Assembly (NCBI GenBank): GCA_904063045.1
Contig: CAJFCJ010000021.1
Span: forward strand, 434,001-498,000
Length of the DNA stretch: 64,000 nucleotides
Reading direction: 5' to 3'
Source: Dimorphilus gyrociliatus
Lineage: Eukaryota > Animalia > Annelida
Part shown: one piece after another, positions 1,413 to 35,876 of the stretch
Layout of the letters: the number at the start of each line of letters is the position of its first letter
Position numbering within the stretch: the stretch's first letter is position 1
The notes under the pieces: model-generated
The model's input: only the letters and a program-made list of their open reading frames with translations
Database searches by the model: none
What the model was told of the DNA's origin: nothing
Made by a program: the position numbers and the translations under genes

Positions 1413-2444
1413 CTATAGTAGAAGGTGACCTTTCAACGTGACCTGAGCATTCCCAGTTAACTCTACACGGTCATCTAAGACACTTATGTTTACGGTGCCT
1501 TTTCTTGCTCTGCCTTGTCTTGCTCTCATTTTCTTTTTATTCAAGATGTCAGACCAAAAACTACTAAGAGTCGTATGTGCTGAACCAGTAACGGGATCTT
1601 CATTTACTCCTAACCAAGGAGCAAACATTCGCGAAACAAAATCATAGCTTTTGCCTTCTTTATCCTTGAATTTGTCTCCTTTCATTGTCACTGATATCCA
1701 TTCAGTAACGCTTGTATTTAGTAGCCTATGAAAATTTGGCGTAAAAGCTTCAAACTCTTCAGCACTAACTGAATCCTTTAGGTGAACAAGTCCATATTTC
1801 AGATTCTTTGATAAATAGACGCCTTCAATAGGTAAATTACCCGAAACTTCATCGCATACTATCTTCCAATCTCCTTCAATACTCTCAATTCTTTCCAATG
1901 TTTTATCCAAAGGCAATGAAATAGTTATACCTTCTCCATGCTTTCTTGCAAACAAACTACCACTCTTTCTTGTGACGAATTCAATTTCTTCGTTCTTATT
2001 TCCCAGTGTGTAGAAAAGAGAAGCAGCACTCGCCAAAGTTGCATGACCACACAAAGGTACTTCTGTTTCAGGAGTAAACCATCTAAGACCGAACTTTGAA
2101 GCTTAAGTGTAACAATAGCGATATTAATTATAACTTTATTAGAACTATTATTATTTGTTATTAAGGTAAGTACATTTGTCAAAGGTATCGCCATCCTTTA
2201 ATATTTTAATGTAAGCTGTTTCTGATAGGTTCATTTCCCGAGCAATATTTAATAGAAAAGTATCATCGTAGTCCTGGAAATAGGTTAATTACACTTATTA
2301 TTACATAATATCTAAACAAATACTAAGCAAATATAAATATCTTAACTCAACAACCTGATCAAATTTTAAGGGACAAATAGCCGCCTGATTGCCGGTAAAA
2401 GGACCATGGGCGAAGGCATCAATAATGCAAATTTCTTGTTCCAT
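1413..2444 (-). CDS. PBLD: Phenazine biosynthesis-like (PhzF family) epimerase
   Basis: Exons 2444-2355, 2273-2174, 2101-1413 with GT-AG boundaries. Motifs IDAF..PFTGNQAAIC, EMNLSETAY, LRWFTPETEVPLCGHATLAS, SRMFAPWLGVNEDPVTGSAH. Confidence 0.95.
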
Positions 2445-5400
2445 TTCTCTCTGTAAAAGGTAACGAACTGAGAGATATAGAGTTCTAGGTATGTACTGAT
2501 TCTTCAGAAATCCGTATTTATACTAAGATAAGACAATAGGATCAAAGTTCAGCAAATTAGAGTGAATATGTAAACTTGCTTTGTCACAACAAGACTACAA
2601 AATTTAGTGTGGCACTAGAGGAAGAGTATACATGTCTCACTAGTTTTTTGTATTCAAATACACGATCAGCCTATTATAAAATTATATTATGTAAACAGGC
2701 CGAAACTATTTTTTCTTTCGCCTTTCTTCTTTACCATTTCCTTCCTACTATCGCTCTCTGTCTCCCTCTCTCTCTGTCTCTGAGTTGACTTTTCCCCCCA
2801 CCATTACTATTATTCTCCATCCATTTCAATATCTATCTTTCTCTCTTCCTATCCTCTCTTCCAAGCTTACTTGCTTAAGTCACTTACTTACTCTTCCTTT
2901 CATTCTTTCCACTATCTTACGTTTTGTTTTACTTAATGTTTTATTTATCTATTTTCTACCTAAGCATAAGAGTTTTAGGTTATGGAAAAAACAAATAAAA
3001 CATGTTTTTTCCCACATCTTAAATGTTATTACTATTGCGCAATGTAAGAGAAACTTACAAGAACAGATAAATTTTAATGCAGTTTATTAATTTTACATAT
3101 TTTATTTATAGAATAAAGAAAATAGATAGTTATTCTATCTGTACTATGCATATTATGTATGTACATATATATACATACTATATATATATATAAAGATTAT
3201 TTAATACATATAATAGAGTATTTAAAAGGCTTGTATAGTCCCCTATTTAACGTATATGTATAGACAAATATACCATACAAGTATACCTATATAATAGATA
3301 AAGAATACCGGTACACGTGTTCATATAAGTTTATATTTGTAAAAGCTTAAACAATCTGGTTTTTTATAATTTATTCATAATTTTATTAAATTTTTGCTGA
3401 TTTATCTTCCGTATCTGTATGTTACAGATGTAAGGAAAAAAAATGAAATATATAGTGACGCAGGCGTCTAAAACTTAAAAAAGAAAGGAATTATTGTCTT
3501 TTAAATTATGATATTATATATATTTTATGTTTGAATAAGGATAATTAGTTTGTTGATTTCATTTAAACAATTAATAGACGAGTTTAATAGAAAGTCATTA
3601 TTTAGTAAATTAAGAAGGAAAATGGACGACAATTAAGATATTGACGAAGAGAAGGAGGATTGAAACTAGTTTGGAAACAGAGAGAGAGAGAGAGAAAGAG
3701 AAGTGATCAAGTATTGATACGTTTCTCTTTTCATTCCACCTGCTTGTTTTATCACTACCCTCTTATCGGAGTATGCTACATTTCTTATCATTTAAAACTG
3801 AAAGATTGTGTTCTATACTCTACGGTATTTAAAGCTCTGATTTTACAGTATAATCTATGGAAATTATTTTAAGAATAGGTGAACATTTAGCCTATTTACT
3901 CTAAATCGATTGGATAAACTTTGACCTAGTTTTTTTTTGACACTTGGATATCCATTACTAAGTAATATAAATCTAATACATAGACGGCGCCGTTGTTCAA
4001 CCAATCTTTCAAACATCTGTGTTATTTCCCCCCGCCGTATTCCATTTATTATAAATAGGGCAGGCTACTTACTCTACCGACTTAAACAAATTTGATTATA
4101 CTCTTGACATCTTTTAATAATTAACTAGAATTGAAAATAGTAAATAAATAAAAGAAAAATTAACGATTAATATGACTTTTCCTCATTTCCATTCATTTTT
4201 ATCCGAATGCAGAAACTCTTGTATTATTTCAAAATATAATAAAAAAGACAGGAATTAGGTAATGTAAACCAAAATACTTATTTAAAAGAGAATGAATAAA
4301 AAATAGAGGATGAAAGAGAGTAGGGGTGGAAAACATCAAACAGAATACTGCGAACGAGTGATAAAGAATGGGTGGAGAGAATGAGCTAGGGAAGGGAGGG
4401 AGAAGGAGAGGAGGTGGGGGGTAGGAAAGAAAGAGAATATAAATGAGTTGGAGGAACAGAGAGGACGAAGGCGAGGAAGGAGAGAACTAGAGAAGAGCAG
4501 TTAAATAGTTCATTTTCTCATCCTATTTTATACTAATTACGATTACATATTCTATCTTGTTTAGTCTGTTCCACAACTACCCATTATAATCTTATCATTA
4601 TTGCATTCCATTCACGCCACCCCCCACGTTTAGTCTCAACTCGACGAATTTAAGGAGGATCCTTTTTGGAAAAGGTAAATGGATAGAGAAGATCGTAAAA
4701 CCACACAGATCTATTTAAACTAGATAATAAATAAAACATAGTAGCATATACAATTTATAAAGGATATAAAAGCCCTATTAAGTTGATTAATTAACTGAAA
4801 TATTATTATTTTTAAAGTAAAGATGAACTTTCAACAGTGTAAACTTTGTAGTTAAGTATGAAATTTTATAGTGAAAAAGAATATAAAGGATATTTTACTA
4901 TTTTTCTCTTGTTTATTATTATTATTCTTCTTGGTATAGAACATACAAGACTAAAGTGTGACTTGACCCTATAGAATTCCACTAAACCACTCTATAAGAC
5001 CAAAAGTACTAAGAACTGATCGCTATTTGCTTTAGGGTGAATTCTATATAAACTACAGTTATTTTCTTTTTTTCAAAAGTAAATGTTTCCCCCTTTACCT
5101 TTAACATGCTTATCTCTAAATTGTGTTTTTACCTTAACAACAAGTCTCTTATTATTTTTTGTAAAGTAGCCAGGATTCCTACTCTTCTCTTCACGATTAT
5201 CTTGAAGGGAAGAGAAGAGCTTAAAGATGGATTTAATTAATATATTTCCTTTGAGAAGGTTTCTGGAAAAATTTAAGATTTTTATCAGAAATGTTCCTAA
5301 TAGAAAAACAAAATTAATAAGAAAAAGAGAAGGAAGAAGAGGAAGAGAATTCAATTTCTTTCTAGAAGATAGATAATTGTACATTTTAAGAGTTTTATAA

Positions 5401-5585
5401 AATTAATGATTTTATCGATTATGTCCATTTAATCCATATTTTTAAATTAAAAAGTCTTTTTAGAGCATTCCATAGGGATTGGGAGTATTTCGTAATCTCT
5501 AATTTCTCCGTCTAAAACCATTAAGGTAATTAATCGTAAACAGGGAACATAGCATGGAAGGAGTGTAGGATAGCAGAGAAGAAGA

Positions 5586-5640
5586 GACACAGACAGACGG
5601 ACCGACAGATAGACAGACAGATAGAGAGACAGACAGAGAG
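5586..5640. repeat. Imperfect (AGAC/AGAT)n microsatellite
   Basis: Direct reading. Confidence 0.7.
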
Positions 5641-6529
5641 AAAACTGTTTAAGATTAATACAGGTGCTTCATCAAGGTTTTAAAACGTTTGCAGATTTCC
5701 GGAAACTTCAGCTGCGTTTTACAGCCGGGTAACTAATACAGTCAGAATGTTAGAAATCTACTTTAGGAATCTATTTTAAATATTCCGATCCGCTTACAAT
5801 AAGAAGTGAATCCAGCTTATACTGAGTACATTCTACTAGTTAATCTTTAGCTTTTTTCCATCATCCTCAACTATGTTTTAGTTCCTCTTTTCATCCACTT
5901 GTCGATCCTAAATAAGTAAGATGAAGGTCTATTGATTGAGTAGTATGTTATTAAATATACAACGTATTCAATTATTTGTCTATAGTATATTTAACGAAGA
6001 AATTACAATATTCCTTTTTTTTTTTATCTTGGCTTAAACTATTCGATGAATTTTTTCGATAATCAATAATTTCAATCTGTGCGTTTAGGAAGAAATGATC
6101 AAAAATTCAATAAGGAAATATTAAGCAAATATCAAGGTGCGATTAAAGCTTTACTATATATTCAATGGGAGAAAAAAGGGAGAATACATTTGTCTAAAAC
6201 GTTGCAAAATGTAATTTGAATATAGGCCTAGCGGCCATTAGAGTAAATAACAGTTTTATCACTGGGTAAAGTTGATTTATAACTAGTTGACCAGAGACAT
6301 TTAAAGGAAAAGGCTATATGCTTATATATAAATGTATATTGTAGGTATATACTGCATATATATATATATATTATAGAGTATATGACTTGAGGTAAATTTC
6401 ATTCTATCAATAATTATTGGCTTTTTTTTACACTACGTTTAAAAGCCCTTCCGAGTATTTTACTCTATTTTATATATATTTGAACTTTTCGCAATATATT
6501 TCCTACGATATCCATTACGTCTAATTTCC

Positions 6530-6612
6530 TGTCTCCTCCTCCTCCTTCTTCTTCTCCTTCTTCTCCTCCTTCTTCTTGTTCTTGCGCCTCTTCTTCTCTT
6601 GCTTTCTTCTGC
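6530..6612. repeat. Imperfect (CTT/CCT)n pyrimidine tract
   Basis: Direct reading; it generates the poly-Arg ORF 6460..6654. Confidence 0.75.
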
Positions 6613-6921
6613 TCTTAAGGAAGATTTCAATTCCATCTCCAGTTTTTTTGGCATATAAACTAAACAGGTGTTTAGTCAACTATCACAAAAATATTGTATT
6701 ATGGACAACGACGTCTAATGTTCGACTTCTAAGAAACACAATCGATTTTAAAGTGTTTATTTAATTTTTCTACTCCTCGTATAGATATTTTAATGGAAGT
6801 AACATTAAAAAATGCTTACATTTTGATACAAATAAAATAGAAATACATATATAATTTATACATATTTGAAAAAGTGATAATATAATCGTTATTATTCATT
6901 CCTCTTTCGGTTTTTTTCTTA

Positions 6922-7517
6922 TTAATTATAGTGATTTTGCGGGAATTTTACATGGCATTCCGTAAAAACTCTTGTACATCTTTGAACGCATTCGATATCG
7001 TTAAAAAATTCTGCGCATTCGTTAAAGCATTTCTGAAAGGTAGAAAAAAGAAAACCAATAATTAATTATATAATAAAACGTATTGTAAATATAGTGTTTT
7101 ATCCAGAAGGGTTTTATTTAAAAAAAGAAAACCACAATAGACGCCATCTAGCGTCTATCATAAGAAGTATATCATTATGATAATGAATCTAAAAATTAAT
7201 TACCGTATAAACTGGATTACAAATTTTGTAAGCAATTGTAGGCGATTTAGACCGTTTTAATAATTCCAAAAGTTGCCTTTCATCGTCAATATTTTCTTCT
7301 GTATTTACATTTAGCACACTGAGTAGTATAACAATAGTACCAATCTGGAATTTATTGAAAATAATTAATGAATGAACGAATGAATGAATGAATGAATGAA
7401 TGTAAGCCGATATATACAGTATATGCATATATATATATATATATACATATATTTCTATTAAAAATCAGTTAAACAAATAACAATAGAACAGCTATTTACT
7501 ATTATAAAATATCTCAT
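6922..7517 (-). CDS. Secreted six-cysteine prepro-peptide, 89 aa, no family recognised
   Basis: Exons 7517-7500, 7344-7204, 7032-6922 join in phase 0 at canonical sites. Product: MRYFIIIGTIVILLSVLNVNT-EENIDDERQLLELLKR-SKSPTIAYKICNPVYTKCFNECAEFFNDIECVQRCTRVFTECHVKFPQNHYN*. Confidence 0.8.
7367..7402. repeat. (GAAT)n microsatellite in intron 1 of the peptide gene
   Basis: Direct reading. Confidence 0.85.
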
Positions 7518-7629
7518 ATTCTTTATCTGTTGTTTATTTATCCTTTTTCAATAGAAATGTGCAGTATCCTTGTAAAAGTTGTTATCAAACGAGTTTTGTT
7601 TGTTTTTAGAAGCTATTTTCGCAGCTATT

Positions 7630-7637
7630 CTTTTATA
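7630..7637 (-). promoter_or_regulatory. TATA box candidate for the Cys-rich peptide gene
   Basis: TATAAAAG about 110 nt upstream of the ATG at 7517. An AATAAA lies at 6761-6756 downstream of the stop. Confidence 0.45.
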
Positions 7638-7820
7638 CGAACAAAAATTCTAACAGATCTATCTATCTTTATATATAAAAGGATTATAATAAATTGTTAG
7701 AAACAATTGTAATTATACAATATAAATAGGAAATAACTGATAGGAAAATTACTGACAAATAGATGAATCCAATTGGTGCAGCGCCAATTTTCGTAATTAT
7801 TCAACATAAAGATTAAACTT

Positions 7821-7843
7821 TATTATTATTATTATTATTATTA
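7821..7843. repeat. (ATT)n microsatellite
   Basis: Direct reading. Confidence 0.85.
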
Positions 7844-10800
7844 CTATTGTTCCTTTTATTAACTGATTAAGAAGTTTATATATTTTCATTCATTCATTCG
7901 GGGTGAATTAATTTGTTCTTTTATTGTTTAGTTTCATTTATTCAAAAGTGTTTAATAGTATATTAGGTTAGGCAAAGTAGACAAAGAGTTTTGATGTATA
8001 TACCGACAAACATCAACAACTTTCAAGCCAATTAGTCAAGCCTTCTCTTTGTGTTCAAAACATCCCAATGAAGAAAGCTTATCTAGTTTGAAAAGGGATA
8101 TAAAACAGCCATCTTTCTTTTATTACATTTAATGTCAACAAAAGGATTTAGCGTAAGTTTACATAAGAATCAAAGGAAGTATTAACAAGAATAAAAGTTA
8201 CATATTTACGTTCATTTCTCTTATTTATGCTTGTAATCTTATCAGGTTTCACAAAAGGATATAAGATTAATAGATTATCGAATGGAATATGACTGTAAGA
8301 TGTGTATATTGAATAAATTAGCGTTACGTAGCTGCTAATTTCTGCTGAATGTTTGCATGTTTATTTGTTTGAAGTAAGACAGATCGGCTTTCCCTAAGGT
8401 CATCACTTACTCAGCTCGTGATCTAATATCTTAAAAAGATAGCCCCTGGGCTATTAAGCATCAAAAGTAAAGAGGATTTACCAATCTGTTCAAACATTTT
8501 TTATTTATCCAAAAAAAGTCGTATTTCAATAGAAAAATTCCATTCATTACTTAAGATTAAAACAGATATCGTGAACAAAAAGAAGGTTAAAAGCTCTTTA
8601 GAGATTTCTACCAATAGGTAGTTCAAAATAATTTATAGATCAATTATTGCTTAGATTTTATAATAAAAAAATGACAAGATATCGAAAGATAGATATAGAG
8701 TTTCATGTTTTATATTAAGACATATACACGTTTTCTTTCTTATTATCAAACTTTTTATTAATAACGAGGGACGTTAAAAAAAATATGAAAAAAAAATCAA
8801 TATATGGGTTATAAATAATATAAATGTAAATATTACAGGTATTAACCATAAATAAATATATTCATCCATATAAGTGTATATAACTATATTTCATACACAC
8901 TTATATATGTTTTAAGTATCATAGTTATATATACATGTATATGTACAACTATTTCTTTTTTAACTATAAACAATCAAAATCAAACCTTTTTACGTAATAA
9001 ATGTATTGTTTTTTTTGTTTTTACAGTTAAAGTTTTTTTTATCAGTCGCGATACCGACAGTTGTCTCCACGAGTTGAAAAAATGATGAATTCTTATAGGT
9101 CTTCATTAAATATCCGAATCTGAAAGATACAAAAAAAATGTTGCTTTTTATTACTGGACTCTTTTTGCCAATAAAAATTTTTTATTTTTCATTTTTTGTG
9201 TTTAATATAAATAGAACAAGTACGAATATTGATACAATCGAACTTTCATATGCCTTATTCACAATTTAAAAAAAAAAAGATATATTTCAAAAGATTTAGC
9301 CCTGTCAAATCGTAATTTATGATTTTGGGATCAAACAAAGTAGGCCTAAATGTGCTGTATTCTTTTATTATTAAAACTTATATTACGTACATCATGTAAA
9401 TCCAAACTCTAAATTATACATAAGTAAGTATATTTTGATTCTTTTATGAAATTTAACCCTCAAATAACCATTTATATATAGAAAAATACAGTATATATAT
9501 ATGTATATACAATATATATTTATATATACATACATATATAGATAATTAATGTATAGATGCGAATATATGTCAAAATATCTATCTGTACTCACATTCTGAT
9601 AATCTCTTTTCATTATCAGCTAAAATTTATTCATAATTCACCGCAAAACATTAAGATATTATAATTTAGAATTATTGATATATATTCTAAAGAAGTTTAT
9701 TCTTTAAACTTTTACAAACTATTCATCTGACAGTGAAAATATAAATATAAATTTGTTATTCACTCTTGAGAAAGTATCTTATTGTAGCTAATACTTTTTT
9801 GAACGACGTAATGTAAATAAATATATGAAAATGAAACTCTTTAATGTTTCACAATGTCAGATAAATAGTTAGCCAAGTGCTACTTTTCAAATCATAAAAT
9901 TATCAAAAATTATACACCTAAAAAAATATAAAAAACATATTGTAAATGCCATCAATTAATTACAGTCAATGGAAAAAAGTCACGTATGATTTGTAGAACA
10001 TAGTCTAATTCCAAAAATATCTTTATCGATAAAATATAAAGTTCTTATAGCCACCGGTTTTTTTAAAAAAATAGTCATTTTACATTGTGGTAGTTTTACA
10101 CAATTATTAAAAATGTCATCAATTAATCCACAGCAAGGTTTCATTTAAGATCTTTAGGATTTAGCTTAAAACTTTGGGTATTTTTACAATTTCTAAAATT
10201 ACCAGTTATTCCTTACACGAGCATGCAAAACGGTTCAGTAAGAAATTTACGTTGAAAACTTTACATAGCAATATCAACAAGAGGATGTTATGCAAATAAA
10301 ACATCTTATAAAATATACCAAACATTTTAAAAAAAATATATGTAATATATACAATATATATATATAAATAAATATATTTCTATATATATATTCTATTTAT
10401 GTGTATTTCTTTATAAATATATATATATATATATATCAAAAGATATAAATATATACATTCATATGTAACTAAAAATTGTATATAGATATAGATATATATA
10501 TATCATATACATATATTATATACATATATATGTTTAAATATAACCGATGTTTAGATAAAAAAAAGCCATACCCTGAGATAAAATTAATAAATTACACTCT
10601 CCGATAATAATTAAAATACAGTAACATACAAAAAGGGGTAAAAAAGTGATCTTAGAATATCAAATAACATTAAAACCTGTAAGTTCAAAACAATTTCTTA
10701 TGAATAATCAAGAATAGTTGCCAAATTACACCTTAATTTTAAATATTACAGAATTTTGTAATAATATTTAAATATAAAGTGTAAAAAGGATGTAACCCGA

Positions 10801-11533
10801 ATATCATGCTTTCTCTTTTTTTGATCCATTAACATGCAAAATATATGAAAATATGTAAATAGATATAAATACGCAATGAAACTCACAAATTGTTTTACAT
10901 TAATTATCAAATATGAAGTTATAAAAAAACATTCAGACTAATCCAATAAATCAGTAAATTTGTGGAACATCGTTTAGTTTTTTTTAATTGAGCAAACTTT
11001 TATCAATAAATATTTTGAAAATTTATGCATTGATCGACAATAACGATGTTACACGTTTTTTCGCATTTTGGAAAAAATGTTATCAGGTATGCCACATTGA
11101 AAAAAAAAACATCTTAACTGGCAATATTTGGTTCTAATTATATGATAAATGAAGAAAAAATCACATCTGCAGCCTAGGACCGTAATATAAATTTGCATTT
11201 GTGTGTAATGTGATAAGAAAAATACATTTTTTAAAGCAAAATGCGCATATAATGCACTTTAAAAAAAAAGGTATATATGTAGAATAAAGAACACAAAAAA
11301 ACGTACGGATTCTGAGCATTTTTAGCACCGTTTGATTTATGGCGAACATGTCTTACAGAACATGTTGATTACATAATTATAACAAAATAAGGCACGGATA
11401 CATTGATTAGAATAACATACGTATAAACTTTTTTTTAATTAAAAATTCAACTTAAATATTTAATTCAGAAATTAAATGACTTACCGGCTATTACCCTGTA
11501 ATGATTATTATAAATAATTTTAAGAGCACTCAC

Positions 11534-13531
11534 CTAACGTCTACTACTGCGATGATGTCTTGATTCATAATGGTCATCATAGTATCTTTCCCTACTACGA
11601 TCTCTGTAATCTCTTTCCCTAGATCTTGATCTATCCCTACGACTTCTTTTACGATCATCTCGTTCTCTTGATCTTGATCTATCCCTTCTGCTAGACCTTT
11701 GAAATGACAATAGAAATTTAAAAATTCCTTTAGAAAAACTTAAGGGAAAGTTCTTACTTTCCACCGCCATAACTCTTGGATTCAATACCATGTAGGGTAT
11801 CTTGAAGGGACGAGATTAGGATCTTACACCTGTCGTCGTTCGCTATCTTACTTTGCTTAATCAATGATATAGCAGTAACAAGAGTTTCAATAGCTGAAGC
11901 ATAGTCTCCTGCCCTGGCGTCCTGAACTGATTTGTTAATTGCGCTGCTAGAGACGGTTTTATTCCTACTAAATAATTCTTCAAATTCAGCTTCAGAAATA
12001 GGTTGTTGATCTGCTCCACGAGATGAATCCATTGGTCTTCCAAAAGCATCAAAGGGAGTAGCCGGAGCTCTATCACCAGTTCCGTAGGGATCTGGATTTC
12101 CTGGATATTGAGCTGGTCTGCCAAAAGGATCTGCCTGAGGAGCGGCGGTTGGAGCTTGGGAAACAGTGGGGAAAAAGGCTGGGTTTACATGAGGAGCAGG
12201 CGCTGTGGCCATTCCCGGAGCGTTGGGAGCTCCTGGATTCATCTGATTTCCTGGATTACCCGGAGCAGCAGCCTGTAGACCACCGCCAACACCTACTGGT
12301 CTAGATGGACGACTGGCATTTACAGCGGCTGCGGCTGCAGCCGCATTTCCTTGATTCCACTCCATTCGGGCTCCTGGTGGCGGTCCACGCATACCAGGAG
12401 CAGCATGCAAAGGTGGTCCAGTAAGACGTGGTGGAAATCCCATTGGAGGTGGTAGACCAGGTCGTAAGCTGGCATTCGTAGCAATGGCTAATAACCTGAC
12501 GACATCGACAACGTTAGGTCCTGTTGTTGGAGGGGGTACAGAGCCTGTAATCGGAGGTCGAGGAATTCCCATAGAAGGTTGGTCTTTTTTCATTCCCGTA
12601 ACTTTGGGAGTATTTTTCATATCTTTTCCATTCGCTACATGACTTCTGTTGTCGCTTAAGTCGAATTTGCTCAAATTCTGTTTATTGGCAACTGTGCATA
12701 TAAGTGTTTGGCCGTTTAGCTCCTTTTGGGGTAATTTTTTCAACAGAGCTTTTACAGACTCGTCAGATTTTAGTAGAACAGTTGCAAGTCTATATTTTTA
12801 AAAAATATCACACAAATTAGTTCAGCCAAAACACGATTGTTCAAACTATTTACCCTTTGGATTGACCATTGGATCGATTTTCAAAGAATTTAATTTCCAG
12901 AATATCAGAAACGCCAACACTGTTAATAGCCTCTTGTAATTGATCATCAGTCGTCCACTAAATTAAATTTGTCATTAAACTGGGTTTCTTATAAAAAATA
13001 TTTTCAATAATATAGTTCTTACCCAAGTCATATTACCCACGTATACACCATGCCTACTCCTATTAGCGGGAACGGGACCATGCATAAAAAAGTTGCGAGG
13101 AGTTTGCTGGTCGGATTGTTCGTTTGTCTATTTGATCATTTAGTAATGATTGTTTATATCTAATGAACGTATTTGTTTACAATACCGTCGATGAGGCCCC
13201 TCCAGTAGTAGTTTCTGGTTTTGTTTCCGAGTTTTCCTCGCTATCAGCTGAATTTCCAGTTATTATGTCATTATAGAGATCATCTCCTTCCGTAGTTGAA
13301 TTATTAACCTAAAATTTATTGGAATATAGATTGTTTTCGCCCATGAAAAATGTATTATATTTTCATTCAGCATTTCGAGATGCCTAATAGATATTTTTGA
13401 CATCTTTTAAAGGCATATTAAATATCGTTTTGTTAAAAACTTAATATTTATGTAAAATGTCTAAAAATGATTTCTCTTACATCAAAATCCTCAGCTACAT
13501 CACCATACAAATCAATGTCCCCGTCCGCCAT
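11534..13531 (-). CDS. CPSF6: Cleavage factor Im large subunit (CFIm68; RRM, Pro-rich region, RS/RD tail)
   Basis: Exons 13531-13481, 13308-13186, 13127-13023, 12957-12854, 12789-11758, 11696-11534. Motifs [81 protein letters not shown] repeats. Confidence 0.95.
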
Positions 13532-26627: not shown

Positions 26628-27686
26628 TTAAAATTTTGAAGCCTTTTGTAGAACTATTGAATGTTCTGTTTGAGAGGAATTGCCCTTTCTTATATTCTTG
26701 AATAATTGAAGAAATTCACCTCTGAACTTTTTTCCACTTAGACAATAAATATAAAAATTTAGTGAGTTGTTACAGTGTGATAAAACTCCAAATACTAAAG
26801 CTAGAATTTTTATCTTTGCAGCTTGATTGGGCGATGGATTTGGATTAAAATTTTGAAAATAGACGTTAAGCCAAACTAACGGTAGAGTTGAAACTGTAAA
26901 AAATACAGATAAACTGACAAGTAAAATAGATAGTTGATAGTTTTTCATTTCATTCCTATCCAAGTTAAACGTTACCAAATATAATCGTTTTCTCTTGGCA
27001 ATTATTAACTTTCTCACTATTAAGGAATTAATAAAAAACAGTATAACAGATGGCATAAAGGTGAAATCGAATGCCACTACTAAACTATGCACATTCCTTT
27101 CATACAATTCTACCGATTTTGTCCTATATACACATAGGAAAATATCATCTATTTTTGATATAGAAGACCTCATAATTAATGCTTCATCATATATGAAAAG
27201 TTTATGGGAATAGTATGCAAAATGTATAAGAATAAGACAAATAGATACAATCTTTGCTCTCTTCTTCGAGCAAATATTTTTAGCTTTGGTAGGGAAGATT
27301 ATAAAGAGACTTCTATCCAAATTCATAGCAACAAGAATCCATGCACTCGAAGTTGAAAATATAACTGGTAAGAATCCATCCATTGCACAAAAGTAATATC
27401 TGTAAACTTGCTTATTATCCGTTATTGTAGTTTCCATAAATTTAAACATTCTACCAAAAGCTTCCAAAAGTAAAGAAATTGTATCGACAAACGCTAAATA
27501 TCTAAGATAAATGGAAGTTGTTGTGTAGTTTAGAGACGCTTTACTAAATATTATAAAACTGCAAATATTTCCAAAAATACCAATAAAGCATAGTAACATT
27601 GTAACGCTCTTACAACTGATCATAACAATTTGATAATTTTCAATGAAATAGCTATGATAATGAGTATTATTCGTTAAATTCAACAT
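26628..27686 (-). CDS. Intronless rhodopsin-like orphan GPCR (invertebrate FMRFamide-receptor/Srw-like group)
   Basis: 352-aa ORF with seven hydrophobic segments; GIFGN, MNLDRSLFIIFP (DRY variant), C-terminal NFYIYCLSGKKFR. Confidence 0.9.
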   Translation of the reverse strand: MLNLTNNTHYHSYFIENYQIVMISCKSVTMLLCFIGIFGNICSFIIFSKASLNYTTTSIYLRYLAFVDTISLLLEAFGRMFKFMETTITDNKQVYRYYFCAMDGFLPVIFSTSSAWILVAMNLDRSLFIIFPTKAKNICSKKRAKIVSICLILIHFAYYSHKLFIYDEALIMRSSISKIDDIFLCVYRTKSVELYERNVHSLVVAFDFTFMPSVILFFINSLIVRKLIIAKRKRLYLVTFNLDRNEMKNYQLSILLVSLSVFFTVSTLPLVWLNVYFQNFNPNPSPNQAAKIKILALVFGVLSHCNNSLNFYIYCLSGKKFRGEFLQLFKNIRKGNSSQTEHSIVLQKASKF

Positions 27687-28076: not shown

Positions 28077-31000
28077 TCATTTCACAACTAATTGAATATT
28101 TTCAACTTCAACGCAATTTTTCAATGAATGTTTCATGAATAAAGTTTTTAATTCGCCTTCCGCTTGAACTTTAAGACAGTTGTTCAAATACTTTAATATT
28201 TCATCTAACCTCTTTATTAAATCATTTAAATGATCGTTATTCGTTAATGAATTACGAATGTCATAACGATCCTCCTCTTTAACTTTTTCCTTTTTTAATT
28301 GTTTAATTAGTACTAAAGGTTCATCTTTAATAATATATTTGTTCTTAGAATTTTTAGTATCTTTTGGTTTTTTGAATAATCTGTTAAATAATTCACCAAT
28401 GTATTTATATAATTCTTCATCGTATCCGGTTTTAGTCTTTTTCGATTTGACTTTTTTTAGTATATCGTTTAGAATTGTTATTAAAAAGTTTGTTGCTACA
28501 TAATGAATTAGGAATGCATAGATAATTATAAAGATTTTCCCATACAGACCGGATTCTGCTTCTATTGAATCGAATGATAATTTTCCGAATAGAGTTCGAA
28601 ATAGTGATATAGCACTTGCAATCAAAGTCTTATAGTTGTTCAATTTTGGTCCAAATACTATTAAGCCAAAAAATGATGAACCAATTAAAAATGCAATATA
28701 GCATATTAATAGATTTAAAAGAAGTTCTTTGGTTTTTGTCAATATCGTTGCTAATATAGATATATTTCTGGATATCTTTAGTATCTCTAATAAATGAATT
28801 TGGGCAAAAAAGGCGGATAGACCTATAAAAAGAATAAAATATTTATCAGATGCAAAGAACTTGGAGAAATCAATGATCTTATCTCTAGAGTTCATTACGG
28901 TTTCAACAGTTTTTAAACCAATAATAGTTCTCCAAATGTAAAGTGCAATAGCTGTCATAAATGTTAGTAACGATAGCACAAGGAAAATTGATGGTAATTT
29001 CCTTTGTTTTATTCCAAGTATAACGGTTTTACAAAGTTGTATTAAGCCTATGAGTAACGTAAAACCTTCGATTATTAACGTTATCAATCCTCCCACTCCT
29101 GTATATCTATATAATTTTAAAGAATCCACTTCAATTGATGGAAGAATCTGTCCAAATAAATCTCTTTCGAATATCCATCTGGCTTGTGACATCCATAGAT
29201 TATTCATTATTATAACCTCCAAAATCACCTTAGATGTTGTTCTATCGAACCAAAACTGTTCATTAACATTTCTTAAAATTTTCTGGGCTGTTTCGTTATT
29301 ATCGCCCAAAGATATAACCGACACATTCAGAAAGGAGTTAGTAATGAAATTAGTAAAATTAGTAATTGCAGATTTCTTATCATCGCCAATGCAAGGTCTG
29401 CCTTCATAAAGATTTCGCAATATATTTGATAATCTACATTTCTGATACATGAATCTCTCTTGAATGAGTTTAGGAGGAGAAAATCTCATCTGATATAAAT
29501 CTTGAATAAATTTTTTATCGTATTCATCTCTCTCTTCCGTATTATAGTAATAATCTTGATAAATGGTAGGGATAGCTTCATTACTTAGCCATTTGTTTAA
29601 ATTTTCCAGTGATTTTATAGATTGAACGTTATTTATTGATTTACTTAAAGCTTGATTTTGATAGAAATTCTCAACCTGCCTTGACGAAAAGCAAACGTAT
29701 ACTAATAAGGTAAAATATATTGAATGAATGAAGATGTCAAAGATCATTTTTCTCATACGATTTTCAAGATTCTTTTCTAATTTCTTTAATCTATTACGCT
29801 CCCTAATCTGAATATATTTCAAATGAACTTTTAATTCTTTTGGAACTGTATTAAGGTCCTGCTTTTGTAATTTTATCAATTTTTCCTTTCCAGTTTCGTA
29901 TTGAAGAAGATCGCTCTCTTGTTTCAGAATGAACGTAAGGAAGATAACAATGAGAAATACTTTAATTGGTTGAAGAAGAATAAAACTTTCGAAGAAAGAT
30001 AAAACAAACGAGACCAACCACTTGACCGATTTTTCTTTACCCCATTGAATAGAATAAAGTATGGTAAAGAATGCCGAAGAAAGAATAGCAACAATTGCCA
30101 CTGTCCATCCAAAAATTACGCAAAATCTTCGTTTTCTCTTCGAATTGAAGCAGGAAGTAATTACGATCAAACCTGGTACAACCACAATGCTACTAGCAAA
30201 ACTTACATATACTTCATTCACCGTGAATGAGTATGGTCCAATAGTAAAAGCGCTTTGTTTAGGACTCGTTTCCGAGTTCCTATAAAACATACAACTAGCA
30301 ATCATAGACAAAAAGAGAGCAACGAAACAAGTTATTAATCTTTGTAGTCTTGTGAAAATTGATCTTATTCTCTTTGTTCCAATTGATAGCCAAAGATGAT
30401 CATCAGCAAATCTTCTTTTGGTATTTCTTATCAATAGAGTTGAAAGATCGTATTCGAATTTTTCAAATTCTGCTAATAAAAGTTCTTCATTAATCAAACC
30501 AGCAAAGGATAACCAATCTTCATGGGTAAAAAGAGACCAATTATTTGTCGAACAGTGAATAATGATTATCTTGGACAGGTATAGTTTAGTATTCGAAGGG
30601 AATGGTTCAACTGTTCCGATTTTTAGACAAACCAATTGGCCAAGATAGTTCGGCGTTGTAAGCATAAAAGAACTACATGTATCCGACTCAACCCTCTTAA
30701 ATGAAAAACGAAATTAAAAGAATGATAAATTATGTGATAATTAACTTTGTGCAGACTATAAACTGCATAATTAATATATGTAACTTACATAATCATCTTC
30801 TGATAGGATTCTTTGACCCGAATTACCTTCTGTACCGTATAACGTTATATAAATTCGTAGATTTGAAGATTTTATTATCGTTTTACCAGTAAATACATGA
30901 ATTTCGTATCTATTAGAGTCTCTTTCCTGATTGCCAATTAGAGATATAGGTTTCCAAGAAATTTCATCTCTAATATCTAATCTTCGAGCCAAAATGACTA

Positions 31001-34000
31001 ATGGTATTAATAATACAATTAAACAACAAATTGTTGAAAAAACCGCTGCGTTATCGGCTAGTTTTGAACCAAAATTTAAGAACACTGTATCAAAATCAAT
31101 TAAATTAGGTTTAATATCTAAACCAGCCCCTAAGCTGCCAAATATATTACTCTTGAAGCGGGTTGTTGATGGTGTACTTCCTTTATCGATATTACATACA
31201 GTAGGGTCTGAATGCCAAGTGTTACCATTCCAGATATTGCAGGAGGCATTAAATATTGTTACGTTATAATTAATTATCTCTAAATCTGAATCAACAATAA
31301 AGTAAAACGTTGTGTTATCATTCTGATCAATAACTAATGTTCTTAGATATTCGTAACAATACTTTTCATTCATCTGTTTTGTACAAGATATATTTTGAGG
31401 TATTGAAAAATTCCGATAGGTGGCATTTGTTAAATTTCCTGCTGTAAATGATACAGTTAAATTTCCTTTCAGTGGTTCAAAGGTTAAAATTAAAGGTATC
31501 CCGGATTGTGTAACGTTTATAGAATGTATAACTTTCACTTTTGATTCTATAGATTCCGATTTAGGCTTCGTAATATCCATTGTTAAAGCATAGGGCTCAT
31601 TTAATGTTTCTTTCAGTTTTTTATTATCCTCTTTTTTGGAACTTTTACACGATTCTAATCGAAATTCTGCAACGCTCGATTTAACGCGATCGGCACTAGC
31701 ATCCCATATATAAGGGTTAATAGTAGACACAAGTAGCATTCTCTTAATACAATCATCATCATTAATATCCATCATTTTATTGATTGATGGAATTTCTATG
31801 AAACTATGGCGAGCGGAATACGTCTGGTTGCTCATATTTTTCCAGTTATTTCTTTCTAACTCTAGAGTTATATCCTCCAAAGATATTTTCGTTGCACCAT
31901 CCCCAACTCTTTTATCGTCTAGTAACTCATCACTAACGTTGTGTATAACGGCGACTACCTCTCTCATAACGACACCAACTTGAGTTTGTGTATCATTTAG
32001 CATAACTTCCGGCTCTGGTGGAGTTTCAGTGGGACCTAGATTATTAATTGTTGAAAAACAACTATTCTTACTGCCCTTTAAATAACTTTTAACCTCTTGA
32101 TTATGTGAATTCGCGGCCGAGGCAATACGAATTCCGCTTTGAATAAGGCTAACCGACAAGTCTTCCGTAACTTGTCTCCCAATTCTCCCTCTATTATTAT
32201 TTAAAGCTGAATTTAAATTGGTTAGTTGAGTACTAAGATCATTTTGAGTTTGAATATCGACTTCATTTGGCTTGGATGCTAAAGAATCTATTAGACCATT
32301 ATTTTGCTGCATCTCGTCAGCTGTATTAAAAGGGATTTTTTTTGTATGATTAACCATAATTCCTCTTAAATTCATCCTTCTCTGTCTTCCTTTGCATTCG
32401 TTATCCTTTCTTGTAGGTTGATCATCAGTTTTCGAAGAGTTAGACGTTAAATTTACGTTTAAAATCGAAGTTACCGAGAAAACGCTGGAAGCTACTTGAC
32501 TAAAACTGCCGTTTTTTATTTTATCAGTAATATCATTACTAGTCATAATATTCATCGTTTCATTTAGCAACTCCTCTTCCGGAAGATTGGGAACAGTGAC
32601 TTCAACATCATAAAGAAACTCCGTTTGATCCCCTACGGAATCCCTAACGGTTATTACAGCTTCAGTCAAAAAATTCTTATCCGGATTCCCAACCGGTAGC
32701 ATCAAAGGTACAGATTCCTGGTTGTAGGAAAAAAATAAAAGAAAAGATTTATCTGTTCCTTTGGGTCTTGCTTTATATTCGTATTTCAAACCCAAACTTC
32801 CTTCCCTCTTGTCGTATTCCAACCAACCTTGACAACTTATCATAAAATTTGTGATGGAAGCAAAACCACTTCTAGGTTCGCAATTGCAACTTCCCCCAAA
32901 AGGCCTTTTATTTCGAAGGAATTTTTTCTCAAACTTTGTAGTTTTATTAAGAAATCGTCCTTCAACTTCTAAGTAATGCCATACTCCTTCCTTTAAAGAA
33001 TTTTCCAATATTTCTATCCTCTTCGATGTAGTAGTCGTCGATATGTGCAATTTTGATTGAAGGTCAATTTCTATTTTTCCTCCTGAATATTCTTCAAATA
33101 ATCGCCATTTATAGTAAACTTCATCAAACATAGTTGAACAATGTTGCAGGCAATCAACAGCAAATACCATTGGTAATCTTATAGCTGACTTTTTACCGCA
33201 ATTTTCCATACATCTGTAATATCAATAGAATTATTTGTATCACAGTAATTATTTAATTATTAGTTTACTTACATTACATTGACAACTGGAATACCAGTTT
33301 CAATAATTAATTCCTGTACTGAATCCACGAACGCCGAAGGGGAGCTAACTCGAACTCTAATTAGAAATCTTTGTTTTGTATCTAAATATGCGGTATTTAA
33401 CGTAAATTGATTAGCAGTGACTGGTAACTTTCCAGGCCCTGTCCCAAAACATCCTCCACTCTTTAAATAGTCGTTGGTTATGTTAGGTGGATAATTGATG
33501 TATGTCAATTTGTTAGTTATATTATCTTGTTCGTGGGAAAGCTTACAAAACCATTCAAAGCTTATTTCATCCATATTATCGGATTTTACTAGGGCTTTAA
33601 AGGTAACATTATCAGAATAATTAACATTGATAACACTTCCGCCTTCAACTGAAACATTTAAGGGTAGATGTACTATTTGAAAATATATTGAAGCATTTGC
33701 TGTTGTTTCTTCTACTTTATTCATACTAGCGCTGAAAAATGCTGCATAATGTCCGTAATTTAGAGAGAAAGCTTTGCACAATAAGGTTTCATTAAAGCCT
33801 TCTCTAATAGTTGTATTCGTATCTAAATATACAAGTTTCCAATAATAATCAATTTTACTAGTTTTTGAACAGAATACAGTTAAATTAACGAATAGTTCCA
33901 AATGATCAGTTTTGAATAGATCAGGCTGAGAGAGAAAGTATTTATTGACGTTTATTTTAGGAGGAAAGCAGTACCAGTTTTTAACCTCAAATTTCTTAAA

Positions 34001-35876
34001 AACCAAGTCACTACCTAAATGATTAAAAGCGCGAATAGCTATATAATAAACGCCTTCGTTTTCGTAACGATACTGAAATCTTATTAGTTTATCGTTTTTA
34101 CTGATTTTAGTGAAATTAAGAAGTTTATCCTTCGAATAATCCTCGCATAATTCATCCAATCCGAACGTTCTTTCGTCTAATGTATTACCGAATTGTATAT
34201 GTAAGCAACCCCTATCCCCAATATTATCCATCTCTAAAATAAATGTTGTTAAATTGAAAACCAAAATTGGTTCAACGATTATTATAGAACGTATAATAAC
34301 CACATCCAATCTCACTAATACTTTAGCTTTAGAAATAACCTCCGAAACAGTATTAGAACAATTCGTTATCATGTTTAAAATGCCTAGAGAGGATTTAGGA
34401 AGAGTTTGTCCAAAGTTGAAATTTCTGTCCCTAGGCCAAATTTTGACGAAGATATATTTTGACATGCCGTTGCTAAATTGTATATTGCAAGAAATATCTT
34501 CCAATATTTCTTGTTCTTTATCCAATTCCAAAGAATAGTTAAGATTTCCTGGTGGCCAGTATATTGTATCCTTGCAAATAATATTTACAAGTTTTATTCT
34601 ATTTTGAACGACTATCGCAACCCTTACTTGACCTTTGCTAATTGGATTTTTAGCCTCCACAACAACTGTATAATTTCCGGTTTCGTTATAAAACTTAGAG
34701 AGAGTTAGAGGCGTCTCTGAAGCGAATATTAGAGGATGCTCTACCTCTATTCGAGTAGTATCATTAAAGTCAATTACGAATGTGACATTCGAGCCTTTTT
34801 GCATAGTTATATTCAAGTGGAACTCTACCACTGGCATAATATTATAGGCGGTAGATAGTAGGGTCAAATTTGATATTTCTTCGAAAATTGAGAAGGTGTG
34901 ATTAGTTGTCATAGAACTAACTAAGTTCCAGCAGGAAAGATGGAGATTAATGTTTTTACCAACATCTCTCCTAGTTAAATTATGTAATAATAATTCTGTA
35001 CGTTTTTTTATAGAAAGCTCCGGAAGAAATCTAATTTCCGCCACTGCAAAATTCGTTGATAAATTCCAGGAACAAAACACATCGCTAGGTCCAATTGAAT
35101 TAGTATTCGCCTCTAACCAAAATTTGTAGATATCTTTATTAAAAGTGAAACGTTCAGATTGAATTATTTCAATCTCTTCAATTGCATTCTGAACGATTAC
35201 CTCATAAGTTAAATTTAATATTGCAGAAATGTTGTTAGAAGTCTTAAAAATGGCTTGAACTTTAAAATTACCGGCAAGGGAATACGAATGATTAAAAACA
35301 TGTCCAGTTGAACACGACAAATGAAATGTTTCGGTAATATTATCGCCGTACATAAGAATTACCGTTGAATTATTACCAATCACAAAAAATTTAGCTGTCT
35401 CATTCGTTCTCAGGATATTTTTATCAGAATTTAATGAATAATTAAGCTCATTTACAGTACTTTTAAAATGGATTTTATTATCTGTAAACGAAAATAACAT
35501 TAAAAGAAAAGTTTAATGACATTTTCTTTTATTGTTTTTAAGTGGTAGAAATAAAAAAGAATAGCTATAAATATTCTATTAAGCTATTTATTATTGTTGT
35601 TGTTAAGTATAAATGTATGTAATTTAAGGAAATATTATCTAGCATTAACTTGGATAGTATCGATAGATACTATAATACATACTTTTCCATAATCAAGTAC
35701 GATTATGTGTCTGTCATATATATGTTATATATCATTCATACATATACTGTATATATATACATTATATACTAATATATGTATACAATACATTATTCTTCTA
35801 TTTAACACTTACCAACTATACAAATCAATTGCAAAATTTCAAACGAAAGGATACAAAGGATCAATTTTGGAATCAT
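28077..35876 (-). CDS. Polycystin-1-like protein (PKD1L/REJ family), 2438 aa
   Basis: Exons 35876-35813 (signal peptide), 35481-33273, 33213-30789, 30695-28077 sum to 7317 nt, in frame. Contains PKD domains, REJ, GAIN/GPS, TM1, PLAT, further TMs, a TOP domain and channel-like TMs. Confidence 0.92.

Follow-up and report, generated by a model that had tools for sequence, protein, structure and literature searches.

A three-exon gene for a predicted six-cysteine secreted peptide in the annelid Dimorphilus gyrociliatus

Described helical hairpins and the new locus

Small orphan cysteine-rich secreted peptides are common in invertebrates. The water-borne pheromone attractin, secreted by the marine spiralian Aplysia, has six cysteines, two antiparallel helices and nested I-VI, II-V and III-IV disulfides; its cysteine spacings are 8, 6, 5, 6 and 7 residues, and its maturation is not known to involve an acidic propeptide or a Lys-Arg (KR) step. 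The pollen allergen Ole e 6 is a protein of about 50 amino acids (aa) with six palindromic cysteines, two antiparallel helices, three disulfides and a flexible C-terminal tail, and eclosion hormone has two CXXXC pairs. The plant alpha-hairpinins share the motif CXXXC-(X)n-CXXXC and a helix-loop-helix fold (PMC4695807). Here we describe a gene from a 64,000-nucleotide (nt) stretch of the genome of the annelid Dimorphilus gyrociliatus (contig CAJFCJ010000021.1 of assembly GCA_904063045.1, positions 434,001 to 498,000; hereafter the window, whose own coordinates are used throughout) which, as read from the sequence, encodes a six-cysteine secreted peptide in three exons on the minus strand, at 7517-6922. 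This is almost certainly a real, transcribed and spliced gene coding for a secreted precursor. Judging from sequence comparisons, its product apparently represents a new lineage-restricted family, with a new cysteine framework, within the known class of cystine-stabilised alpha-helical hairpins.

The peptide resembles the plant alpha-hairpinins (EcAMP1, nigellin-1.1, MBP-1, VhTI, BWI-2c) in that their inner motif is matched by Cys2-x3-Cys3-x8-Cys4-x3-Cys5, and the helix-loop-helix arrangement is also shared, according to an AlphaFold2 model of exon 3 (moderate confidence, without Cys1). However, the worm peptide has an extra outer cysteine pair, lying seven residues further outwards on each arm; it is the product of an animal gene and is near-neutral (charge +0.6, pI 7.6), whereas the plant peptides are Lys/Arg-rich and cationic; and whereas the latter are released from vicilin or multimodular precursors, the worm gene encodes a single peptide, preceded by a signal and by a propeptide ending in a KR site. 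A preliminary description of the locus, made from its sequence, had considered the spacing to be unlike that of the alpha-hairpinins; this holds for the outer pair and for the overall framework, but the inner four cysteines do fit the plant motif (PMC4695807). The predicted geometry of the worm peptide would be compatible with the two nested disulfides of the plant family (C1-C4 and C2-C3 in the numbering of the latter). No sequence similarity between the worm peptide and the alpha-hairpinins was detected in our searches, all of which were conducted exon by exon with the 36-aa and 47-aa coding parts.

Neither coding part matches the Pfam profiles of attractin, Ole e 6, eclosion hormone, CHH/ITP or zf-Tim10_DDP, and no attractin chain was recovered in the PDB sequence search at E <=10 with these short queries. 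The worm peptide and attractin are of similar size, have six cysteines and are secreted, but the spacings are 6, 3, 8, 3 and 6 in the former and differ from those of the pheromone; in Ole e 6, a plant protein, they are 3, 3, 9, 3 and 3. Eclosion hormone and CHH/ITP, which are arthropod and spiralian hormones, are, as predicted for the worm peptide, secreted, helical, three-disulfide peptides released from precursors at dibasic sites, but they are longer and have other cysteine frameworks. The twin-CX3C motif is common to the worm peptide and the small Tim proteins; however, small Tims and the CHCH hairpin p8MTCP1 are made in the cytosol without a signal peptide and reside in the mitochondrial intermembrane space, whereas the worm precursor is predicted to carry an endoplasmic reticulum-type signal, followed by a propeptide, and to form a third disulfide pair. 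The tests run place the peptide outside the attractin, eclosion hormone, CHH/ITP, defensin-like and small-Tim families.

No Pfam family scored above its cut-off with either exon. The defensin-like profile PF24552, the sole match at E <=10, reached 14.7 bits with residues 1-20 of exon 3 (gathering cut-off 27; E 0.032) and was rejected, as the match is driven by cysteines and the predicted fold is helical, not CS-alpha/beta. A word search with exon 2 within its 79-aa open frame gave no candidate, exon 3 gave no usable match in the ESM Atlas, and the only PDB sequence match, to C5a anaphylatoxin, had an E-value above 1 and was discarded. HMMER with exon 3 against 1.84 billion representative proteins, a library so large that a 36-aa query finds only relatives of about 50% identity or more, returned a single match (P0001, E 1.6e-4) and no self-match. 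We consider P0001 to be an artefact: it is a 704-aa tandem-repeat translation with another cysteine spacing and no Pfam domain above cut-off, and its score is summed over five repeats. Its repeat unit is about 90 aa long and its N-terminus is homeodomain-like, below cut-off; such repeats can inflate E-values for short cysteine-rich queries. A fold search of the PDB placed nigellin-1.1 among tied structural matches (root-mean-square deviation 1.6 over 30 residues), with no family recognised. The initial impression that the peptide belongs to no recognised family was thus upheld in Pfam, in the word search, in HMMER and in the PDB sequence and fold searches. The peptide motifs and framework strings were not found in the literature searched, including the four text supplements of the genome paper (PMC7854359). 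Because HMMER gave no self-match, the gene seems to have escaped annotation and to be "hidden", and the result suggests that it is not in the protein sets of the collections searched. Its absence from both protein collections indicates that short multi-exon peptide genes are still missed even in a well-assembled model genome.

Gene structure, transcript and copy number

When the three exons are joined from the window sequence, they form a coding sequence of 270 nt (89 aa) without internal stops. Exon 1 contributes 18 coding nt (7517-7500), namely the start codon and residues 1-6 of the signal peptide (MRYFII), and ends at the donor ATA/GTAAAT. Exon 2 (7344-7204; 141 nt, 47 codons; acceptor TTCCAG/, donor ACG/GTAATT) encodes in succession the remainder of the predicted signal peptide (residues 7-21, 7344-7300, delimited by hydropathy and the -3/-1 rule), the 16-aa acidic propeptide with its terminal Lys-Arg (residues 22-37, 7299-7252) and residues 1-16 of the predicted mature peptide, among them Cys1 (7251-7204). 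The coding part of exon 3 (7032-6922), preceded by a T-rich tract ending in TTTCAG/, comprises 36 codons, which specify Cys2 to Cys6 and a 10-residue tail, and the TAA stop. Intron 1 (7499-7345, 155 nt) and intron 2 (7203-7033, 171 nt) are both of the GT..AG type and in phase 0, the latter separating Cys1 from Cys2. The preliminary description had given these coordinates, junctions and translation, all of them correctly; its remark that a mechanical list of open reading frames (ORFs) catches only the middle exon is also accurate, this exon lying within a 79-aa ORF at 7189-7428.

Two public sequencing runs were compared with positions 5600-9000 of the window: a 2017 run whose library type is unrecorded (X2) and a marine metatranscriptome from 2025 (X1). 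X2 contains a single 513-nt contig with 100% identity and no mismatches, corresponding to 6807-7032, 7204-7344 and 7500-7624; the segments left out, of exactly 171 and 155 nt, have CT..AC ends on the plus strand, which is GT..AG on the strand of the gene. Both junctions anticipated from the sequence, 7500/7344 and 7204/7032, are therefore found exactly in RNA, and since one contig carries the two of them, the joining of the exons cannot be attributed to chance. The introns and most of the 3.4-kb surroundings are uncovered in X2, and because its cover is patchy and the introns are precisely removed, this run has the character of cDNA. The contig is unlikely to derive from a processed DNA copy, since the 77.9-Mb genome (77,897,245 bases in 349 contigs) contains every exon just once, and no paralogues were found when this genome was searched exon by exon. 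A genome-wide search with a DNA pattern of the cysteine framework returned 299 matches, compared with 184 in the control, and was swamped by TGY-rich microsatellites. The depth of the X2 contig is 501, compared with 4-8 for the few flanking contigs; the transcript is apparently abundant, contig depth being a poor gauge of expression.

In the RNA contig no AUG precedes the start codon, which has an A at -3 and an in-frame TGA upstream, and the 89-aa ORF is the longest of the RNA model on either strand. The 5' untranslated region (UTR), which forms the first part of exon 1, spans 7624-7518 as far as the RNA reaches, the X2 contig continuing beyond 7624 into Illumina adapter. The 3' UTR covers 6921-6777, its end being not exactly fixed (the X2 contig extends to 6807 and a relative in X1 to 6777), and a candidate polyadenylation signal, ATTAAA, is located at 6794-6789. 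TATA-like runs were noticed by eye at 7676-7669 and 7637-7631, and carry little weight in so AT-rich a genome. Intron 1 contains (TA)n and (TTCA)n microsatellites (7365-7445).

Precursor, conservation and predicted fold

The layout proposed in the preliminary description, with a signal peptide, an acidic propeptide, a KR site and a 52-aa six-cysteine peptide, is borne out by sequence statistics. Residues 1-21 are predicted by heuristic to form the signal, with the n-region MRY, a 14-residue hydrophobic core (Kyte-Doolittle window means of 2.5-2.9 across residues 5-20) and a V-N-T/E site which fits the -3/-1 rule, and signal peptidase would cut near T21/E22. The following 16 residues (22-37) constitute the acidic propeptide (pI 4.4, charge -3.2), which ends in KR at 36-37. 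This site has Leu at P4 and hence is not of the furin type (R-x-K/R-R); because the furin-type Arg is missing at this position, a prohormone convertase of the PC1/3 or PC2 type would be expected to cut after K36-R37, and such a site would in turn point to the regulated secretory pathway. The cysteines occupy residues 48, 55, 59, 68, 72 and 79 of the precursor. After cleavage at KR, the predicted mature peptide (52 aa, pI 7.6, charge +0.6, mass about 6.17 kDa) is perfectly symmetrical, 10-C-6-C-3-C-8-C-3-C-6-C-10. It lacks both an N-glycosylation sequon and a C-terminal Gly that could serve for amidation.

The nature of this precursor bears on the proposal that the peptide is a reproductive or structural accessory product, for example part of the egg, cocoon, mucus or adhesive, or, as in the case of Aplysia attractin, a water-borne pheromone that is deposited together with the eggs. 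A transcript that seems abundant in a library of the whole-animal type would be in keeping with such a role, as would a small, stable, disulfide-rich helical hairpin such as is predicted here; attractin itself is likewise a six-cysteine, two-helix peptide with nested disulfides. On the other hand, a convertase-type propeptide is unusual for structural secretions, and the exon-by-exon Pfam and PDB searches connected the peptide neither with attractin nor with another family. We therefore regard an accessory role as rather improbable.

Conservation could be assessed against a relative in the marine metatranscriptome, where a 260-nt contig is about 93% identical over 6777-7033. Two substitutions are present among the 112 coding positions of exon 3, both synonymous (CCG to CCA at 6940, Pro; ATC to ATT at 6994, Ile), whereas the 145-nt 3' UTR has accumulated 12 substitutions and 3 indels, a divergence of 8-10%. 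The difference between coding sequence and UTR is significant by Fisher's exact test when indels are counted (P = 0.005), and none of the 7.5 non-synonymous changes predicted from the UTR rate is observed (P = 0.0006). As the coding changes are only synonymous while the 3' UTR has diverged, this comparison with one short contig indicates that the peptide is under purifying selection. A degenerate 39-nt pattern of exon 3 had no matches in the JGI metagenomes. X1 also contains two partial matches of 32-35 nt (7048-7079 and 7669-7703) with long unlike flanks, which are most likely due to chance in AT-rich sequence.

Could the transcript be non-coding, or bear an ORF by accident, so that the peptide is never made? 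The protein is known from its sequence alone, and no distant homologues were found with the exon-length queries. Nevertheless, translation would begin at the first AUG, whose context is good, and this ORF, the longest of the transcript, has a canonical signal peptide at its start; the two differences in the coding sequence are silent next to a UTR divergence of 8-10%, and the six cysteines are set in a perfectly symmetrical spacing. Altogether, a transcript without a peptide product appears exceedingly improbable.

The fold was modelled with AlphaFold2 for exon 3 alone, from Cys2 to Cys6 and thus with Cys1 absent, as a single sequence. The model consists of a helix at 2-9, a five-residue loop and a helix at 15-29, with a moderate mean confidence (predicted local distance difference test, pLDDT, 74); the helix-loop-helix suggested in the preliminary description thus receives support for the exon 3 portion. 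On ideal-helix geometry, the three cysteines of each arm, placed at i, i+7 and i+11 on one and at i, i+4 and i+11 on the other, lie within 40 degrees of each other. Because the cysteines of each arm would share one helical face, three nested disulfides are possible, and the putative C1-C6, C2-C5 and C3-C4 pairing can form in a geometrically natural way. Cys1 is directly followed by Asn-Pro, which resembles a helix N-cap; this cysteine would accordingly lie across from Cys6, where the hairpin is open. Helix 1 and the loop are acidic and would lie opposite a basic helix 2. Both helices exceed the mean of shuffled sequences in hydrophobic moment, with marginal significance (P about 0.07 each). 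The 52-aa peptide would then fold as two antiparallel helices and, in our judgement, is probably a disulfide-stapled helical hairpin. If the three-disulfide hairpin is true, the small class of cystine-stapled helical hairpins gains a new cysteine framework, and this scaffold is of interest to peptide engineers.

Such a fold also brings to mind venom-type ion-channel toxins, like the helical-hairpin toxins of scorpions, cone snails or nemerteans, since both the precursor layout and the disulfide-stapled hairpin are known in toxins. However, multigene expansion and diversifying selection, as a rule found in toxins, have left no trace in this single-copy gene, and no toxin family was matched in the exon-by-exon Pfam, HMMER and PDB sequence searches. 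D. gyrociliatus is a microbe-grazing meiofaunal annelid and is not known to possess a venom apparatus. A toxin is, in our analysis, the least likely of the functional labels initially put forward for the peptide, and would be a very improbable identity for it.

Possible function and genomic surroundings

A signal, a propeptide, KR and a cysteine-rich peptide make up the layout of many invertebrate antimicrobial peptides. The worm peptide might accordingly be a gland-secreted agent of host defence or surface protection (antimicrobial, antifungal or enzyme-inhibiting), working like the alpha-hairpinins and produced in large amounts by glands of the epidermis, pharynx or gut. A contig depth of 501, where neighbouring contigs have 4-8, would suit an abundant gland product; an orphan, lineage-restricted distribution is typical of defence peptides; and a plant hairpinin, nigellin-1.1, is among the tied structural matches. 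Furthermore, the inner four cysteines fit the motif of the alpha-hairpinins, a helix-loop-helix family (PMC4695807). Set against the cationic, Lys/Arg-rich plant peptides, the near-neutral charge of the worm peptide agrees less well with such an activity, and we consider a defence function somewhat unlikely.

Instead, we tentatively favour a secreted signalling ligand, with a probability of about 0.4. The peptide would act outside the cell as a soluble ligand (a hormone, a neuropeptide or a pheromone-like signal) and not as a membrane-lytic agent. This reading is preferred because of the near-neutral charge, the conserved residues and the opposition of an acidic helix 1 and loop to a basic helix 2, and because the KR site is convertase-type and not furin-like. 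It is also consistent with a single-copy gene in which all exon 3 residues are conserved in comparison with the marine relative. As in precursors of the hormone and neuropeptide class, an N-terminal signal is predicted (by heuristic) and a dibasic KR is present at 36-37. A more specific proposal, which we put forward as doubtful, is that the peptide is the founding member of an undescribed animal signalling family, a hormone or pheromone built as a three-rung (i, i+7, i+11) disulfide-stapled hairpin, restricted to dinophilid annelids and missed by annotation.

Several points weigh against a signalling ligand of this kind. Most bilaterian neuropeptide families are widely conserved, and the only relative found here is one near-identical marine sequence. 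The selection test is based on a single 260-nt contig, the fold model covers exon 3 only, without Cys1, and the amphipathicity statistics are marginal. The signalling role, the processing at KR and the disulfides are all predictions, from sequence or from a model, and the apparently high abundance of the transcript would fit a gland product as well. Finally, a canonical complement of neuropeptides is described in the genome paper, whose four text supplements contain neither of the motifs searched (PMC7854359). The three-disulfide hairpin, if true, would also provide D. gyrociliatus, a tractable miniature annelid whose nervous system has been mapped, with an orphan peptide for which a receptor or target can be looked for. 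The finding is a solid one, but only moderately surprising as long as no function is attached to it.

The G+C (GC) content of the window is 26-38%. The gene is located in a very AT-rich region of about 9 kb (2200-11500, 26-29% GC) with no other convincing ORF, and thus stands alone in a gap which is unusually large and gene-poor for so compact a genome. This gap is flanked by a PhzF-like gene (1413-2054) and by a gene for a Pro/Gly-rich, RS-tailed protein (11534-12743). Just upstream of the peptide gene, at 7914-8702, three near-contiguous X2 contigs of depth 5-8 were detected; this segment contains no ORF of more than 44 aa and no Rfam match (Rfam was empty over the whole of 2000-12000), and it may correspond to a low-level non-coding or promoter-associated transcript. 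On the 3' side of the gene, a purine-rich simple repeat (6527-6590) gives rise to a spurious poly-Arg ORF (6460-6654). Further along the window, three very long uninterrupted ORFs (862, 812 and 743 aa) follow each other on the minus strand at 28077-35500; they specify multi-pass membrane segments together with extracellular repeats rich in N-glycosylation sites, and have the appearance of a single large gene with giant exons, for a receptor or a channel. A 352-aa ORF resembling a G-protein-coupled receptor is located at 26628-27686.
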